From: Macrostomum lignano
Taxonomy: Eukaryota
Direction: 5' to 3'
DNA length: 64,000 bases
Assembly: GCA_002269645.1 (NCBI GenBank)
Contig: NIVC01002427.1
Span: forward strand, 62,001-126,000
Below are positions 6,305 through 16,700 of the stretch, piece by piece. Made by a program: the position numbers and the translations under genes. The notes under the pieces are model-generated. The model ran no database searches and was not told the origin of the DNA. It worked only from the letters and a program-made list of their open reading frames with translations. Position 1 is the first letter of the stretch; each line of letters opens with the position of its first letter.

Positions 6305-8927
6305 TCATTTCGCCGCCTTTGACTTCTTGCCGTCGCCTGCAGTTTTGGATTTGGCGGAGCTCCTGCTGGAGCCACGGCTGGACTTTCTGTCCCCGCCAGC
6401 CGGCCCGGAAGCTCCAACGGTCGAGGCCGAGTACCTTGGCGGCGGGCCTGCGGAGGTTATCGTTTTCTTTACAGAGCAGTGAGTGAACTTGTGATGGTTG
6501 GGATCATTGCTGAACCATTAGGATTAATCGAAATTACCGTCGAGAAGGAGTAAAAAACTCCCCAAAAATATGCTAAAAATATATAAAGATAAATACCCTC
6601 CCAAAACAAATGCGACTATCCCCCATAATAAAGCAAAATGCCCAAAAATAAAAGGAGAAATACTGCCATACAAAAATGAGAAAAGTCCCATCGGGAGAAT
6701 GAGACATAGCCTATAGAAAAAATGAGAAATACCCCACAGAGGAAATGACAGATACGCCATAGAGGGAACAAAAATACCCCACAGAAAAATGATAAACAAT
6801 TTTCCATAGAAAGTATTATAAATAACCCACAGCGAATAATAAATATACCACAAATTACCCCTCGAAGAGTCAGAAAAATTACCCCTCAAAACAATCTAGA
6901 GCAAGGCCTGAGTAAGCAGCAATTCTTGGAAGATTCTGTTTATGTAAACGCGCAACCCAAACTTCAAAACTTCAAGAAATTCTCTATTAACTTTCAGACC
7001 TGAAAATGACACTACTCAATCATCAAATCAAGCAGTAGTATAATAGGAACATCGCCAATGACACACACAAACCGCACTCACCCATACTGGCTGGCCTGGG
7101 CAGTGCAGTTCGCTTGGCTTTGTATACCAGATCGATGCAGGCACTGTCAGTGAGGTCCTGAGTTCGCAGCCGCATCTGACGCAAATTCATTTGTAGAATC
7201 TCTCCGATCAGGCTGTTGGGGTACTGAAAATCGATTTTTTGTGGGAAAAATGTCAACTATCAACTCCTAAAACTGGCGCCTCTAAAACTGGCGGCGCTCC
7301 TAAAACTGGCACCGCTCCTAAAACTGGCACCGCTCCTAAAACTAGCCTTCTAAAACTGGCACCGCTCCTAAAACTGGCACGGCTTCTAAAACTGGCACCG
7401 CTCCTAAAACTGGCACTGTTCCTAAAACTGGCGCCGCTCCTAAAACTGGCACCGCTCCTAAAACTGGCACCGCTTCTAAAACTGGCACCGCTTCTAAAAC
7501 TGGCGCCACTCCTAAAACTGGCGCCGCTCCTAAGACTGGCACCGCTCCGAAAGCTGATTTAGCATGATTATAAAACTGATTCTCACGTCGTCAATCGCAG
7601 CGTCCTCTTGATCGTCGTCGCTATCTGACCGACTGCGCGTCATGGTCGCTTCCAGATTGCGACGTCGCTGGGCGATCTCGGCCGACTCTCCCAGGCGTCG
7701 CTCAGCTCCGGCAGCCCTGGCCAGCTGCTCCTCAGTGTCCAGCTCGCGCAGCTGGCAGCGGTAGCGGTGCTCCTCGGGCCGGAGTCCGTCGCGGAGCGGG
7801 CACGGCTGCTCCGGCGATTCGACAAGGATGCCGCGACGAAGTCGTCGACCGGAGTACTGCATCGACGGCTGCTTCTGCTTCTGATGCTGGGGTTGTTGAA
7901 GGCAGGCTCGGTAGAGTGCGAAATGACGCAGGAAGCTGTTCACGGTGTACTCCAGGTAGATGGAGGCTGCGCGCTCAGATATTTGGCGCGGAGCCAACGG
8001 AGTAACCATTGACTGAAGGTGGCGCAGGTTCTCTTGCATGGAGCGGTCTGCGGATTGGCGGGTTGAGAATTGTGTCTGTCTGTCTGTCTGTCTGTCTGTC
8101 TGTCTGTCTGTCTGTCTGTCTGTCTGTCTGTCTGTCTGTCTGTCTGTCTGTCTGTCTGTCTGTCTGTCTGTCTGTCTGTCTGTCTGTCTGTCTGTCTGTC
8201 TGTCTGTCTGTCTGTCTGTCTGTCTGTCTTAGTGTCTGTCTCTCTGTCTGTCTGTCTGTCTGTCTGTCTGTCTGTCTGTCTGTCTGTCTGTCTGTCTGTC
8301 TGTCTGTCTGTCTGTCTGTCTGTCTGTCTGTCTGTCTGTCTGCAGGTCTGTCTGTCTGTCTGTCTGTCTGTCTGTCTGTCTGTCTGTCTGTCTGTCTGTC
8401 TGTCTGTCTGTCCTTCTGTCTGTCTGTCTGTCTGTCTGTCAGTGCTTACCAAGAGATGCTATCCAATACTCGGCTGTCAGCTTGGCGAGGATACAAATTT
8501 CGGATTTGCTGCAGCCTCGGGCGTAGAGCTCGTCAACCAAATGATAGAAAATCGAAATGACTACCTCCATTCGTTGGTTGGAGTCGCAGCCTTGTTGTTC
8601 TAATCCAATAAATTTCATAATCCAGTCGCGTGTTAGGCCTTGAGCCTAAAATGTATAAAACAAAACAAAATAAATGGCTAGTTCATGAAGAAATTATTTG
8701 CTTTAAATTGATACTTGTTGGCTTGGTGGCAGTAGAATTGGTGATGTGGGTAACACAGAACCCGGCTGAAAAATTAAGATTTTTCGCCACTGATCTTTTA
8801 GGATCCAAACAGGAGTCCCAGAACATCTGTAGTCAGGTGATAGAGTAATACTCACTTCAATACCCTGAAATGCCGATTCACCGAAGGCACCCGGCTTCGA
8901 TATGATGCCGGAAAGAATCTCTGTCAT
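6305..8927 (-). CDS. C8orf74: CLAMP-domain (C1a-32/CFAP119-related) protein, C8orf74-like, multi-exon
   Basis: Phase-consistent GT-AG exons on minus: 8599-8450, 8047-7587, 7223-7082 and 6447-6305 (TGA, then ATTAAA). The probable first exon starts at ATG 8927, but splicing between 8927 and 8599 is unresolved. [47 protein letters not shown]...YKAKRTAL and a basic tail (GKKSKAAK*) follow the order I recall for human C8orf74 (DYFHHTFIRHYKLYQYVL; LEVCMPPHPLPLAEGM; SLICQAV...LQKKTL; KGKKAKARK). Confidence 0.75.
7265..7548. repeat. 18-bp minisatellite (CCTAAAACTGGCACCGCT)x~16, intronic
   Basis: Fills most of intron 7224-7586 of the minus-strand gene. Confidence 0.95.
8073..8440. repeat. (TGTC)n microsatellite filling intron 8048-8449
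   Basis: Read directly from the sequence. Confidence 0.98.
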
Positions 8928-13700: not shown

Positions 13701-16700
13701 AGGTAGTGAAGTGTCAGGGGAGGCAGTGGAGTGTCAAGGGAGGCAGTGAAGTGTCAGGGGAGGTAGTGGAGTGTCAGGGGAGGCAGTGGAGTGTCAAGGG
13801 AGGCAGTGAAGTGTCAGGGGGAGGTAGTGGAGTGTCAGGGGAGGCAGTGGAGTGTCAAGGGAGGCAGTGGAGTGTCAGGGGAGGCAGTGGAGTGTCAGGG
13901 GAAGCAGTGGAGTGTCAGGGGAGGCAGTGGAGTGTCTGGGGAGGCAGTGAAGTGTCAGGGGAGGTAGTGGAGTGTCAGGGCAAGAAGGCCAGACGCAATC
14001 AAACCAGTTAATTGGATTTTGGGCACACTCCAAACATGATAACGCCTTCTCTGTACTTGTCAGACTTGTAACTGATTCAGACATCGATAACTTGGAAACA
14101 TAGATCAACATGGATCAAACATGCATTTTGCAGAGTTCGTACTTGCTGAGAATATTTGTCTCAAGGCATTGGACATGCTCAGTTAATTTATCCTTATCGA
14201 CTTTATCAGTCCACCCGCAGCTCTCGGTAGCCAATGTGCGGCAGTTCAGAGAAAAAATTCGGTTAATTTTGCTGCAAAAGCTGATAACAGCACCGGGCGC
14301 TCAAAGCTTTAATAATTGATTCGAGCACAGGCCTGAAGAGAAATAGCATAATTCGTAGAGAAGCGTCGCCCTTGCTGTTGCCATGGTTACGTCTATGTGA
14401 GCGGCGAAAAACGCAAAGAATTGAGAAAGATAATTTAACCGGGGTTAAGAGTACAAAAAATCTAGCGACCAGTTTCAAAGTCCTGCGGGGCTGTGAGAGT
14501 GTTCGAAAGATATTGAAAATGTGAATTATGGCGACTGCGTGTTGCAATGAAACTTATTTGACCAGTGAAAGTTAATGTATGAAGTCAGCACTGCACACGT
14601 GTAGCTTGGGCACCTCCAAACTGAAGATCTAAAGTGATTCTCAATATACCTCGGTAGCAGAACAGTCTGGAATTTACTCAGTATCTCAGTATCCTTGGTG
14701 AAATGGCTGTTACTAAGGGGGCCGTAGCCAATGGTCTGATGTGCCAGCGGCCCAGGCTCGATTCCAAGTGCAGTCACATTAATTCGGGGCTGAATTGGAA
14801 TCTCGGCTTGGCACTGCTCGTGCAATCAATGACCATTGAGGTGTACATGCCTAACGATAAATAAAGTTAGGGGCAGGGCCTTACTTGACTACTTACACAA
14901 TGAAAACTGTAATGAAAATATTACGACCATAAATAAACTATTTTAACTAAGACTTAAGAGTTAAATTGAACACTAAGAAGTAAGTGAGGCGCAGGGCTTA
15001 TTAAACATTAACTTAGCGAGGTTGAGTCCTGATAATAAAAGGAGGGGTCGAGTGCGCGACTAAGGAAACAGGCGAGATTGAGGAGCCAATCAGAAGGCAG
15101 CGTGGGAGAGAGAGAATAATAACAAAATTGAACTAGACAGAGAGAGAGAGAAAGCAGAGTAAACAGAGACAAGTGTAGATGAACTGAAGAAATGACTAAA
15201 CAATTCGCGACAAATACAAACTGGGTTTCCCAGCACTCAATGCTTTCTTCAGCACTTTCTAATGTACACAATCTCGAAGCATTTAATACACAAGAAATTT
15301 TCCACCCAATATAACAAAACAAAGGTGGAGTCTCTCTCAGCTATGTACAACGGACCCGAGAGCTACGTTGTTGCCGGCCAAGAAAAGTTCAAGCCATTGT
15401 TCGCCTGGGCCGGCCCGGTGCACCAGCAGCACCAGGTGGCAGCTGGAGGCGGCGAACTCGGTCGCCGGAAATTGCCACCGATCGGCCGGCGTGCCAAAGA
15501 GCAGCGGTTGACCAATGCTCCGGCAAAACCGAGTAGGCTTATGCCTTTTTATTGCTGGCCTTTATATGGAAATTGTTAAAATATAAAAAATATTGATTGC
15601 GTAGATCTATATGGAAAATCAAGCTAACACTTATCTATTTAGTTTATTATTTTAGTATATAGGACTAGCAATCAGCGCCCCCCGTTGGGGTGACAAAAAA
15701 ATATGTAATAAAAAATTTAGAATAAACGACACGTAGTTTTGATCTCTCAGCCTTGATCCGTAAGCCTTGACATCCTACTTTACCAACAGTTAGAATTATC
15801 GGAAAGTGACAATTATAAAATATTTAATAACTGGCTTTTATCGACTAGACTACTTACAGTAGAAATATAAGAAAATTCTTCAAGCTGTGATAAAGTACCT
15901 AATACGTTACTAATTGTCACGTGGTCACAGGTGCATTCAGACCACATTAGGTAAAACTCCGATTTATGTTTATTTCAGAAGGAATTTGGCGCATAAAAAT
16001 TTCTACTCCTACGGGAGACGCCGCCAACGGCACCAGCAGCCGCGTCTTCCTCACCGTCTATGGCCGCGAGGGCCAGTCGGACCCGATTCCGCTCGCCATG
16101 CCGTTGAAGCCGGACGGGCCGGTTAACCCGTTTCAAGCCGGACAGGAGGACGAATTCGAGGTGAGCATGACGAGAATTTCTTACATAATTGTAGTTAATA
16201 ATTTGACCACATATATTGTCACTTTTTCTGGTTTGTTTGCTGATCATTTCTAATCATTGCTAATCATTGCTAATCATTGCTAATCATTGCTAATCATTGC
16301 TAATCATTGCTAATCATTGCTAATCATTGCTAATCATTGCTAATCATTGCTAATCATTGCTAATCATTGCTAATCATTGCTAATCATTGCTAATCATTGC
16401 TAATCATTGCTAATCATTGCTAATCATTGCTTATCATTGCTAATCATTGCTAATCATTGCTAATCATTGCTAATCATTGCTAATCATTGCTAATCATTTC
16501 TAATCATTGCTAATCATTGCTAATCATTGCTAATCATTGCTAATCATTGCTAATCATTGCTAATCATTGCTAATCATTGCTAATCATTGCTAATCATTGC
16601 TTATCATTGCTAATCATTGCTAATCATTGCTAATCATTGCTAATCATTGCTAATCATTGCTAATAATTCCTAATCATTTCTAATCATTTCTAATCATTGC

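Follow-up and report, generated by a model that had tools for sequence, protein, structure and literature searches.

Here we report that a C8orf74-like gene and an RP1-like gene stand head-to-head in the flatworm Macrostomum lignano, and that comparison with other animal genomes supports the inheritance of this pair from an ancestor at least as old as the one that spiralians and deuterostomes share. The genes lie in a 64,000-nucleotide stretch of contig NIVC01002427.1, hereafter the window. Linkage of orthologues from a deep ancestor had been proposed in an initial annotation of the window, and it is supported both by the orthology assignments of the two genes and by their adjacency across phyla.

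The minus-strand gene groups with C8orf74

The C8orf74-like gene occupies positions 6305..8927 of the minus strand. In our splice model it has five coding exons (8927-8856, 8645-8450, 8047-7587, 7223-7082 and 6447-6305), separated in every case by GT..AG introns and encoding 337 amino acids. Its TGA stop codon is found at 6307-6305, and the first position of the interval previously assigned to the pair, 6305, coincides with the final base of this codon. The annotated M. lignano protein BOX15_Mlig001478g2 is identical to the window protein at 332 of 337 residues.

A phmmer search of 1.84 billion representative proteins with the window protein returned full-length eukaryotic matches of about 300 amino acids (E 2e-10 to 4e-4), and every named full-length match carries the label 'uncharacterized protein C8orf74 homolog'. 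The C8orf74 homologues came from Lingula, Littorina, Tubulanus, Crassostrea, Pecten, Lineus, Haliotis, Watersipora and Ptychodera. Against a profile built from homologues of other phyla, with M. lignano sequences left out, the window protein scored 119.8 bits over residues 31-325, compared to 3.9 bits for the best of 1000 shuffles of the same protein, indicating that the match does not arise by chance. In the alignment, the window protein is colinear with the C8orf74 homologues and shares their C-terminal LPRPxxLGPPPRY motif, four residues of which (P, R, P and P) hardly vary in the alignment; in the window protein the motif is followed by a K/S/R-rich tail. Judged by sequence, the minus-strand gene is clearly a C8orf74 homologue, albeit a divergent member.

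The gene had been described as a CLAMP-family gene on the minus strand. Strand and family membership both stood, but the latter needed a sensitive search because the window protein on its own scores 16-17 bits (16.1-16.8) against Pfam CLAMP (PF14769), below the gathering cut-off of 22.7, with a match spanning profile positions 67-96 only. Three homologues, those of Lingula, Tubulanus and Pecten, exceed this threshold (29-37 bits), and the Littorina homologue falls just under it too (20 bits). We additionally considered CFAP119 (CCDC189)/FAP119 as the identity of the protein and ruled it out: CFAP119 aligns only to positions 20-132 of the C8orf74 profile, corresponding to the CLAMP part, no CFAP119-type protein was among the phmmer matches of the window protein, and the best PDB match was FAP114. 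The earlier placement with C8orf74 rather than CFAP119 was thus confirmed by the named full-length matches and the C-terminal motif.

C8orf74 resembles proteins of the C1a projection

When the C8orf74-family profile was compared with the PDB, FAP114 matched along nearly its full length (E 2e-16, profile positions 6-247), with further matches to CFAP119 (3e-14) and FAP119 (9e-10); the window protein alone, in contrast, finds no PDB chain by sequence. An AlphaFold model of the C8orf74-like protein (mean pLDDT 69) matched exclusively chains of the Chlamydomonas C1 central pair, including 7n6g_5E and 7n6g_5I, all with a probability of 1.00. Among these matches, the sequence and predicted-fold relatives of the C8orf74 family appear to be limited to Chlamydomonas FAP114 and FAP119 and mammalian CFAP119. 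FAP114 (C1a-32), FAP119 (C1a-34) and CFAP119 have an all-helical fold and a CLAMP domain in common with the C8orf74 family, whereas the LPRPxxLGPPPRY motif and a basic Ser/Lys tail are peculiar to C8orf74 proteins.

FAP114 and FAP119 are subunits of the C1a projection (PMC6548120), and similarity to them in sequence and modelled fold makes C8orf74 a candidate subunit of this projection. The solved central apparatuses contain chains of the FAP114/FAP119/CFAP119 type and no C8orf74 chain in any, and in the mouse sperm central-apparatus model the C1a and C1e projections were assigned CFAP119, not C8orf74 (PMC12297659). In the searched literature that mentions C8orf74 we found no work on its function.

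The plus-strand gene extends far beyond its tandem DCX domains

The RP1-like gene starts at 11769 on the plus strand. Exons 1-3 (11769-12151, 12740-13127 and 15325-15532) encode the tandem DCX domains and a linker, with two matches to Pfam DCX (E 4e-30). Using the paralogue P0003 and a colinear tblastx comparison with the oyster gene, we traced exons 4-8 (15979-16160, 17122-17347, 19133-19326, 20270-20427 and 20761-20948), which encode two PLAT/LH2 domains (two Pfam PLAT matches, E 2e-27) and the start of a C-terminal domain. Exons 9-11 (22871-22974, 24578-24979 and 26757-26942) cover an FGF-like beta-trefoil region, where the Pfam FGF score of 24.0 bits equals the cut-off. The oyster and window genes are colinear exon by exon, and the TAG at 26940-26942 falls within a GTAAGT donor (26935-26940) that matches, in both position and phase, the donor from which the oyster orthologue splices onward.

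The gene therefore runs to at least 26942. Its previously proposed end, 15532, is merely the last base of exon 3, and the interval given had missed a DCX-PLAT-beta-trefoil gene several times its size. Searching with our own PLAT profile (hmmsearch), we found eight or more additional PLAT-like open frames between 30172 and 46788, every one of them on the plus strand, with Pfam PLAT matches at 38218-39456, 44539-45315 and 46240-46788. They probably belong to the RP1-like gene as later exons, or alternatively represent a part that has split off from it, and the gene probably extends to about 46.8 kb. Orthologues in other phyla measure 2,995-5,757 amino acids.

The designation of the plus-strand gene as RP1-type was upheld by its DCX domains, which grouped with RP1/RP1L1 and not with DCX/DCLK or DCDC2. 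The window tandem DCX scored 125.8 bits against an RP1/RP1L1 profile, 89.6 against DCX/DCLK and 62.1 against DCDC2, and across the four invertebrate neighbour genes the corresponding scores were 126-167, about 90 and 44-62 bits. In a neighbour-joining tree of 190 columns and 2006-era sampling, with references from the supplement of PMC1550402, RP1/RP1L1 and the invertebrate neighbour genes formed a clade in 185 of 200 bootstrap replicates. In UniRef, paralogue P0003 carries the name 'Oxygen-regulated protein 1'. The flatworm gene is sister to RP1 and RP1L1 jointly, not to RP1L1 specifically, and is best described, from these comparisons, as a pro-orthologue of both vertebrate genes with a different architecture.

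Vertebrate RP1 and RP1L1 are microtubule-associated proteins of the photoreceptor axoneme. They share with the flatworm gene the N-terminal tandem DCX, colinear through both domains, beyond which the flatworm gene continues with two or more PLAT domains and a beta-trefoil while RP1 has a long low-complexity tail; the window gene thus lacks an RP1-style tail, long and without other globular Pfam domains, and has PLAT and FGF-like domains after the DCX module. To our knowledge, PLAT and FGF-like domains are absent from vertebrate RP1 and RP1L1. The DCX-PLAT-beta-trefoil architecture is probably the ancestral one. Long PLAT/LH2 arrays are also seen in LOXHD1 and other multi-PLAT proteins, but we know of no DCX module in LOXHD1. 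From its DCX domains, the RP1-like protein may bind axonemal microtubules.

The gene pair recurs across animal phyla

In the window, 2,841 bp of divergent intergenic DNA (8928..11768) separate the start codons of the two genes and include a (TAC)124 microsatellite at 11134-11506. The strands and the shared intergenic region agree with the initial annotation; its gap of about 1.8 kb does not. A second M. lignano contig carries a head-to-head RP1-like/C8orf74 pair with a gap of 2.7 kb. The flatworm has two RP1-like paralogues, and the arrangement is retained solely by the one adjacent to C8orf74.

The adjacency also occurs in intermediate lineages, as had been anticipated. Head-to-head pairs were found in Lingula, where a DCX+PLAT(+FGF) gene faces the C8orf74 homologue across 7.3 kb, in Crassostrea gigas and Pecten (1.4 kb each) and in Lineus (4.7 kb), whereas in Ptychodera the RP1-like gene adjoins C8orf74 on the same strand with its 3' end toward C8orf74. 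In Amphiura, Potamilus, Lamellibrachia and Owenia there was no DCX gene less than 10 kb from C8orf74, and the upstream neighbour in the bryozoan Watersipora is a Cpn60/TCP1 gene. Overall, five of the ten non-flatworm species sampled lack the pair or have its members more than 10 kb apart, and the head-to-head orientation is seen in five of the six invertebrate species in which the two genes adjoin. An EIF3I-like WD40 gene adjoins C8orf74 in Lingula, Crassostrea, Pecten, Lineus and Potamilus, though not in M. lignano, and we saw no developmental regulator gene within 10 kb of the invertebrate loci.

In human, RP1L1 and C8orf74 lie on 8p23.1 and are, we assume, divergently transcribed. That they are immediate neighbours, as the initial annotation stated, is confirmed by the published order PRSS55-RP1L1-C8orf74-SOX7-PINX1 (PMC8027303) and by a second report (bioRxiv 2020.08.31.275685); in human, SOX17 adjoins RP1. 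Both the human locus and the flatworm pair therefore have an RP1-family tandem-DCX gene immediately beside C8orf74, the invertebrate partner differing in the PLAT repeats and FGF-like domains that human RP1L1 lacks. With Chordata taken from the literature, the adjacency is found in six phyla, the others being Platyhelminthes, Brachiopoda, Mollusca, Nemertea and Hemichordata, and so qualifies as a conserved bilaterian microsyntenic pair, for which we required orthologous adjacency in three or more phyla that include both protostomes and deuterostomes. It resembles the microsyntenic pairs of Irimia et al. 2012 (PMC3514665) in that unrelated genes stay side by side in several phyla, with orientation mostly kept. 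Neither gene name of the pair is present in the supplements of PMC8851819.

A motif scan for the X-box (RFX) found none in the intergenic regions of the window, Lingula, oyster or scallop. The motif occurred only in those of Lineus and Ptychodera, in totals within a few-fold of expectation, and no X-box common to all intergenic regions of the pair was found. The gaps of the head-to-head pairs (1.4-7.3 kb) exceed the classical bidirectional-promoter limit of about 1 kb, and the scan detected no motif common to them.

Discussion

The best explanation of these results, and one we hold to be fairly probable, is that an ancient inherited pair has been kept head-to-head by shared regulation, with both products on ciliary microtubules. 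One member is the C8orf74 orthologue, an all-helical CLAMP-family protein of about 300 amino acids related to FAP114, FAP119 and CFAP119. Its partner is the RP1/RP1L1 pro-orthologue, in invertebrates a large protein whose N-terminal tandem DCX precedes PLAT repeats and FGF-like beta-trefoils. A divergent promoter or regulatory region of 1.4-7 kb common to both genes would hold them head-to-head and be used in axoneme-building cells. There, C8orf74 would work at the central pair's C1a projection, while axonemal microtubules would be bound by the RP1-like protein. Such a co-regulated ciliary module, also proposed in the initial annotation, is putative, and two observations weaken the case for co-regulation. 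No X-box is shared, and expression in human differs: RP1L1 is apparently retina-specific (bioRxiv 2020.08.31.275685), while C8orf74 has been studied as a candidate meiosis/cancer-testis gene (PMC4278308), which implies testis expression. Since the Ptychodera RP1-like gene is on the same strand as C8orf74, a shared divergent promoter is not obligatory.

These same points, the reported difference in tissue between the human genes, the changed Ptychodera orientation and the absence of a common X-box, would be expected if the linkage were inherited but functionally neutral, a leftover of ancestral gene order with no regulatory or functional tie. So would the loss or separation of the pair in half of the non-flatworm species sampled, and the conservation of the unrelated EIF3I-like gene beside C8orf74 in five spiralian genera indicates that these genomes retain local gene order generally. 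Yet M. lignano keeps the RP1-like/C8orf74 pair and not the EIF3I-like neighbour, only C8orf74's neighbour among the two flatworm paralogues keeps the arrangement, and the same orientation recurs in four phyla at gaps of 1.4-7.3 kb. We regard neutral linkage as somewhat unlikely. Constraint could instead come from a regulatory block, with enhancers of one gene, or of a third such as a vertebrate SoxF gene, lying within or beyond the other gene as a 'bystander', in which case the two products need not work together. This has been proposed as a general explanation of conserved metazoan microsynteny (PMC3514665); SOX7 adjoins human C8orf74 (PMC8027303) and SOX17 adjoins RP1, and a distance-tolerant enhancer fits an adjacency that outlasts the Ptychodera orientation change better than a shared core promoter does. 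With no developmental regulator seen within 10 kb at any invertebrate locus, we find it very doubtful.

The plus-strand gene might also belong to a separate DCX-PLAT family rather than being an RP1 orthologue, its likeness to the human RP1L1-C8orf74 locus then being coincidental. The vertebrate proteins, as far as we know, have neither PLAT nor FGF-like domains. RP1-group members were confined to vertebrates in a 2006 survey of the DCX superfamily (PMC1550402), the lead of RP1 over DCX/DCLK in a single BLASTP alignment is slight (104 versus 90 bits), and our neighbour-joining tree is short and of old sampling. Against this, the profiles favour RP1 by 36-77 bits, bootstrap support is high, and the same C8orf74 neighbour is found in human, a chance of about 1 in 10^4 per comparison by a rough estimate that was not computed. 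We consider a separate DCX-PLAT family highly improbable.

Under an ancient, jointly regulated pair, a bolder version can be framed, in which C8orf74 would be the animal FAP114/C1a-32, ancestral RP1 a giant DCX-PLAT-beta-trefoil axonemal protein, and the two regulated and acting jointly since the bilaterian ancestor. As a whole we consider this version unlikely. If true, C8orf74 would be a second CLAMP-family C1a subunit, unplaced in current mammalian models, and vertebrate RP1/RP1L1 would be truncated, photoreceptor-specialised remnants of its ancestral partner.

Taken together, C8orf74, a human open reading frame without an assigned function, now has two independent leads to the axoneme: proteins of the C1a projection appear to be its sole relatives in sequence and fold, and an RP1-family gene, of a microtubule-binding kind, has been kept as its neighbour across six phyla. 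In addition, the retinal-disease genes RP1 and RP1L1 appear to descend from a far larger DCX-PLAT-beta-trefoil protein that is extant in invertebrates.

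A C8orf74 homologue on the minus strand

The minus-strand gene of the pair comprises five exons (8927-8856, 8645-8450, 8047-7587, 7223-7082 and 6447-6305) separated by GT..AG introns and encodes 337 amino acids, the final base of its stop codon lying at 6305. The window is Macrostomum lignano genomic DNA, and the minus-strand product is identical to BOX15_Mlig001478g2 at 332 of 337 residues. The UniRef model of the same protein, P0002 (A0A1I8J7E3), has 319 residues and lacks 18 near the exon 3/4 junction (compared at 7640-7200); its UniRef name, 'NPH3 domain-containing protein', found no support in our analysis.

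Pfam was insufficient as the sole means of placing this protein, since CLAMP was matched only below threshold (16-17 bits against a cut-off of 22.7). Word-indexed searches returned M. lignano proteins only when the protein was the query (two matches), and almost only M. lignano proteins when the query was our alignment of C8orf74 homologues (six matches), perhaps because the list of 8000 candidates was taken up by low-complexity words. Exhaustive searching with phmmer, across 1.84 billion representative proteins, gave 22 matches. Those beyond M. lignano and three bacterial repeat proteins were all full-length, at about 300 amino acids (E of 2e-10 to 4e-4), and wherever the source gives a name it is 'uncharacterized protein C8orf74 homolog' (Lingula, Littorina, Tubulanus, Crassostrea, Pecten, Lineus, Haliotis, Watersipora and Ptychodera). 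The homologues align colinearly from end to end, sharing the motifs YD..(K/R)GF and H(F/Y)xLY in the CLAMP part and, at the C-terminus, LPRPxxLGPPPRY and a basic tail. With a profile from which M. lignano sequences were excluded, the window protein scored 119.8 bits (residues 31-325), whereas the best of 1000 shuffled controls reached 3.9 bits. Together, the homologue names, the colinear alignment and the profile score speak against a grouping with CFAP119 or another family, and on sequence grounds the gene is a C8orf74 homologue, as the initial annotation had proposed.

Residues 14-78 (8927-8700) also matched the bacterial repeat proteins, which are 1,400-5,300 amino acids long, with summed E of 6e-11 to 3e-9; the two that were scanned with Pfam, P0006 and P0010, carry Ig_7/PKD/T9SS-tail domains. 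We rejected kinship to these proteins, since the match is most probably an artefact of adding up weak repeats: single repeats reach at most 29 bits (24-33% identity), 7-11 of them contribute to the total, and the query region is predicted to be helical.

An RP1-like gene with a distinct architecture on the plus strand

The plus-strand gene begins with two doublecortin (DCX) domains encoded by exons 11769-12151, 12740-13127 and 15325-15532. It had initially been ended at 15532, which is the final base of exon 3; we traced it well beyond, to a stop at 26940-26942 at least. A word-indexed search with the DCX-PLAT protein returned almost only M. lignano proteins (two matches). First tracing relied on P0003, an M. 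lignano paralogue of 740 amino acids with DCX and PLAT domains that UniRef names 'Oxygen-regulated protein 1'. The resulting 779-residue model was replaced by one of 11 exons and 872 residues, since colinear tblastx against the oyster orthologue exposed one missed exon and longer terminal exons. In the present model, the least certain boundaries are the donor at 20948 and the linker acceptor at 12740. Pfam identified two DCX domains (E 4e-30) and two PLAT domains (E 2e-27), and the sequence of the C-terminal region, with an FGF match exactly at the gathering score, indicates a putative beta-trefoil.

The TAG 'stop' (region 26930-26942) sits within a consensus GTAAGT donor whose codon position and phase match the onward-splicing donor of the homologous oyster exon. 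At least eight more PLAT-like open frames lie on the plus strand between 30172 and 46788, with none on the minus strand, and orthologues in other phyla span 2,995-5,757 amino acids. Given the donor match, the PLAT-like frames and the length of the orthologues, the flatworm gene probably reaches to about 46.8 kb, or was recently split there; it may thus be about 35 kb long and, like its counterparts in other phyla, encode several thousand residues.

We classified the DCX domains with tandem-DCX references published in the supplement to Reiner et al. 2006 (PMC1550402). In single BLASTP alignments RP1 was only marginally the best match (104 bits versus about 90 for DCX/DCLK), and group profiles separated the subfamilies more clearly, with the window protein scoring 125.8 bits for RP1/RP1L1, 89.6 for DCX/DCLK and 62.1 for DCDC2. 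The genes neighbouring C8orf74 in oyster and Lingula scored 167 and 144 bits for RP1/RP1L1, respectively, versus about 90 for DCX/DCLK and about 50 for DCDC2. In a neighbour-joining tree of 190 columns, four invertebrate DCX-PLAT sequences were sister to vertebrate RP1 and RP1L1 in 185 of 200 bootstraps. In addition, an intron in the second DCX domain (…EG/DGxx|V…) occupies the same place in M. lignano (window 13127/13128), Lingula (locus L004, ~2049), Crassostrea (L008, ~7762), Lineus (L010, ~4575) and Pecten (L012, ~7822). From these comparisons the most fitting label for the gene is pro-orthologue of RP1 and RP1L1. Its downstream architecture, with two PLAT domains and an FGF-like region, differs from theirs, and for this reason it ought not to be recorded as an RP1 of vertebrate domain structure. 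The initial description of an RP1-type DCX gene stands for its grouping, and missed its larger size and its further domains.

Linkage of the two genes across animals

Exon models for both genes place them on opposite strands and diverging, as first described; the intervening gap, put at about 1.8 kb, measures 2,841 bp from start codon to start codon. Human RP1L1 and C8orf74, which this arrangement was said to mirror, we likewise take to be divergently oriented. The human gene order is PRSS55-RP1L1-C8orf74-SOX7-PINX1 (PMC8027303), and the RP1L1-C8orf74 neighbourhood is also mentioned in bioRxiv 2020.08.31.275685.

We surveyed 10-kb flanks around C8orf74 homologues, and adjacency was borne out in intermediate lineages. 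C8orf74 and a DCX+PLAT(+FGF) gene are arranged head-to-head in Lingula anatina (gap 7.3 kb), Magallana/Crassostrea gigas (1.4 kb), Pecten maximus (1.4 kb), Lineus longissimus (4.7 kb) and on a second M. lignano contig (2.7 kb). The hemichordate Ptychodera flava has a DCX+PLAT gene of 5,757 amino acids as the immediate upstream neighbour of C8orf74, 6.2 kb away; this gene lies on the same strand, so that its 3' end faces C8orf74. Neither a gene call nor any DCX similarity was found within 10 kb of C8orf74 in Amphiura, Potamilus, Lamellibrachia or Owenia, negatives that are limited by the size of the flank. The upstream neighbour in the bryozoan Watersipora is a Cpn60/TCP1 gene, not DCX, and no C8orf74-like sequence lies near the older M. 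lignano RP1-like paralogue.

A convergent WD40 gene of about 325 amino acids lies directly downstream of C8orf74 in Lingula (L004 13486-19208), Crassostrea (L008 14758-22374), Lineus (L010 14400-18107), Pecten (L012 19074-25149) and Potamilus (L002 29584-31549). Pfam EIF3I is among its listed matches, and its exon translations read, to our eye, like human EIF3I. This neighbour is absent from the window, where tblastx with the Lingula and Lineus copies gave no matches.

Judged by these gene orders, the pair is older than the split between spiralians and deuterostomes, and we consider it very probable that its members are orthologous across these animals and came down as a pair from the bilaterian ancestor.

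Repeats and other features of the window

The initial description of a repeat-riddled genome proved accurate, since long micro- or minisatellite arrays (periods of 3 to 63 bp, up to 323 copies) occur in the intergenic region and in almost every intron of both genes, a separate one in each. The arrays lie at 5623-6190, 7264-7556, 8073-8440, 11134-11506, 12157-12720, 13568-13980, 16237-17071, 19467-20159, 21052-22660, 23738-24542 and 24991-26266, and include (TGTC)92 in intron 2 of the C8orf74-like gene and (TAC)124 immediately upstream of the RP1-like start codon. A GC-rich stretch downstream of the C8orf74-like gene holds reverse-transcriptase open frames (Pfam RVT_1, E 7e-29 and 3e-11) at 165-3313 (plus) and 4363-5250 (minus), probably fragments of non-LTR retrotransposons; the minus-strand frame 4382-5170 had no Pfam match. 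An open frame at 51501-52370 (plus) gives a PAN-domain match that barely reaches the Pfam cut-off (21.5 bits against 21.4) and probably belongs to a different gene, past the PLAT region.

Why the pair stays together

One explanation for the persistence of the pair is that shared cis-regulation in axoneme-building cells would hold it together. A shared regulatory region is favoured by the repeated occurrence of the head-to-head orientation with small gaps, and by the retention of the pair in a flatworm that lost the EIF3I-like WD40 neighbour. A scan of seven RP1-like/C8orf74 intergenic regions for X-box (RFX) motifs found near-perfect palindromic sites in Lineus (L010:8533, 8533-8546, GTTGCCATGGAAAC) and Ptychodera (L007:6266, 6266-6279, GTTACCATGACAAC), and no good site in the other five, the window included. 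As totals were within a few-fold of expectation, we rejected the X-box as support for shared ciliary regulation. The want of a common X-box, the inverted orientation in Ptychodera and the loss or spreading out of the pair in several lineages all weigh against a simple shared ciliary promoter. So do the reported human tissues, testis for C8orf74 (PMC4278308) and retina for RP1L1 (bioRxiv 2020.08.31.275685).

On balance, shared cis-regulation is a tentative reading that we hold to be somewhat doubtful. Its main rival is that the adjacency has simply persisted neutrally, a reading that would sit easily with the scattered losses and less so with the recurrent orientation and the retention in the flatworm. 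A regulatory-block constraint on the adjacency is a minor alternative. Equally minor is a mistaken RP1 orthology, for which the marginal BLASTP result and the divergent domain make-up might be cited, and against which the group profiles and the tree argue.

C8orf74 as a candidate protein of the central apparatus

A PDB search with the minus-strand protein as a single sequence gave no match. The C8orf74 family profile found three sequences, namely Chlamydomonas FAP114 (E 2e-16, profile positions 6-247), mammalian CFAP119 (E 3e-14, CLAMP part only) and Chlamydomonas FAP119 (E 9e-10). An AlphaFold2 model of the window protein was all helical (mean pLDDT 69), and its only structure matches at probability 1.00 came from two C1 central-pair structures of Chlamydomonas, 7sqc and 7n6g, among them the chains 7n6g_5E (FAP114) and 7n6g_5I (FAP119); every other match had an E of at least 4. 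The C1a projection has both FAP114 (C1a-32) and FAP119 (C1a-34) among its subunits (PMC6548120). A recent model of the mouse sperm central apparatus relates FAP114 and FAP119 to CFAP119 and leaves C8orf74 unmentioned (PMC12297659). From the profile and structure matches we infer that animals would have, in C8orf74, a second CLAMP-family component of the central apparatus.

Neither protein family is new, and conserved microsynteny of gene pairs is itself a familiar phenomenon. In the literature searched we found no description of the RP1-like/C8orf74 pair, and the supplements of the microsynteny study PMC8851819 contain neither gene name. The same literature yielded no account of a DCX-PLAT architecture in invertebrate RP1 relatives, nothing relevant on proteins combining doublecortin and PLAT domains, and no link between C8orf74 and FAP114. 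C8orf74 has been studied as a candidate meiosis/cancer-testis gene (PMC4278308), and among the 35 papers found to name it none deals with its function. The chief interest of these results is that they would turn an uncharacterised human gene, C8orf74, into a specific and testable candidate for the central apparatus.
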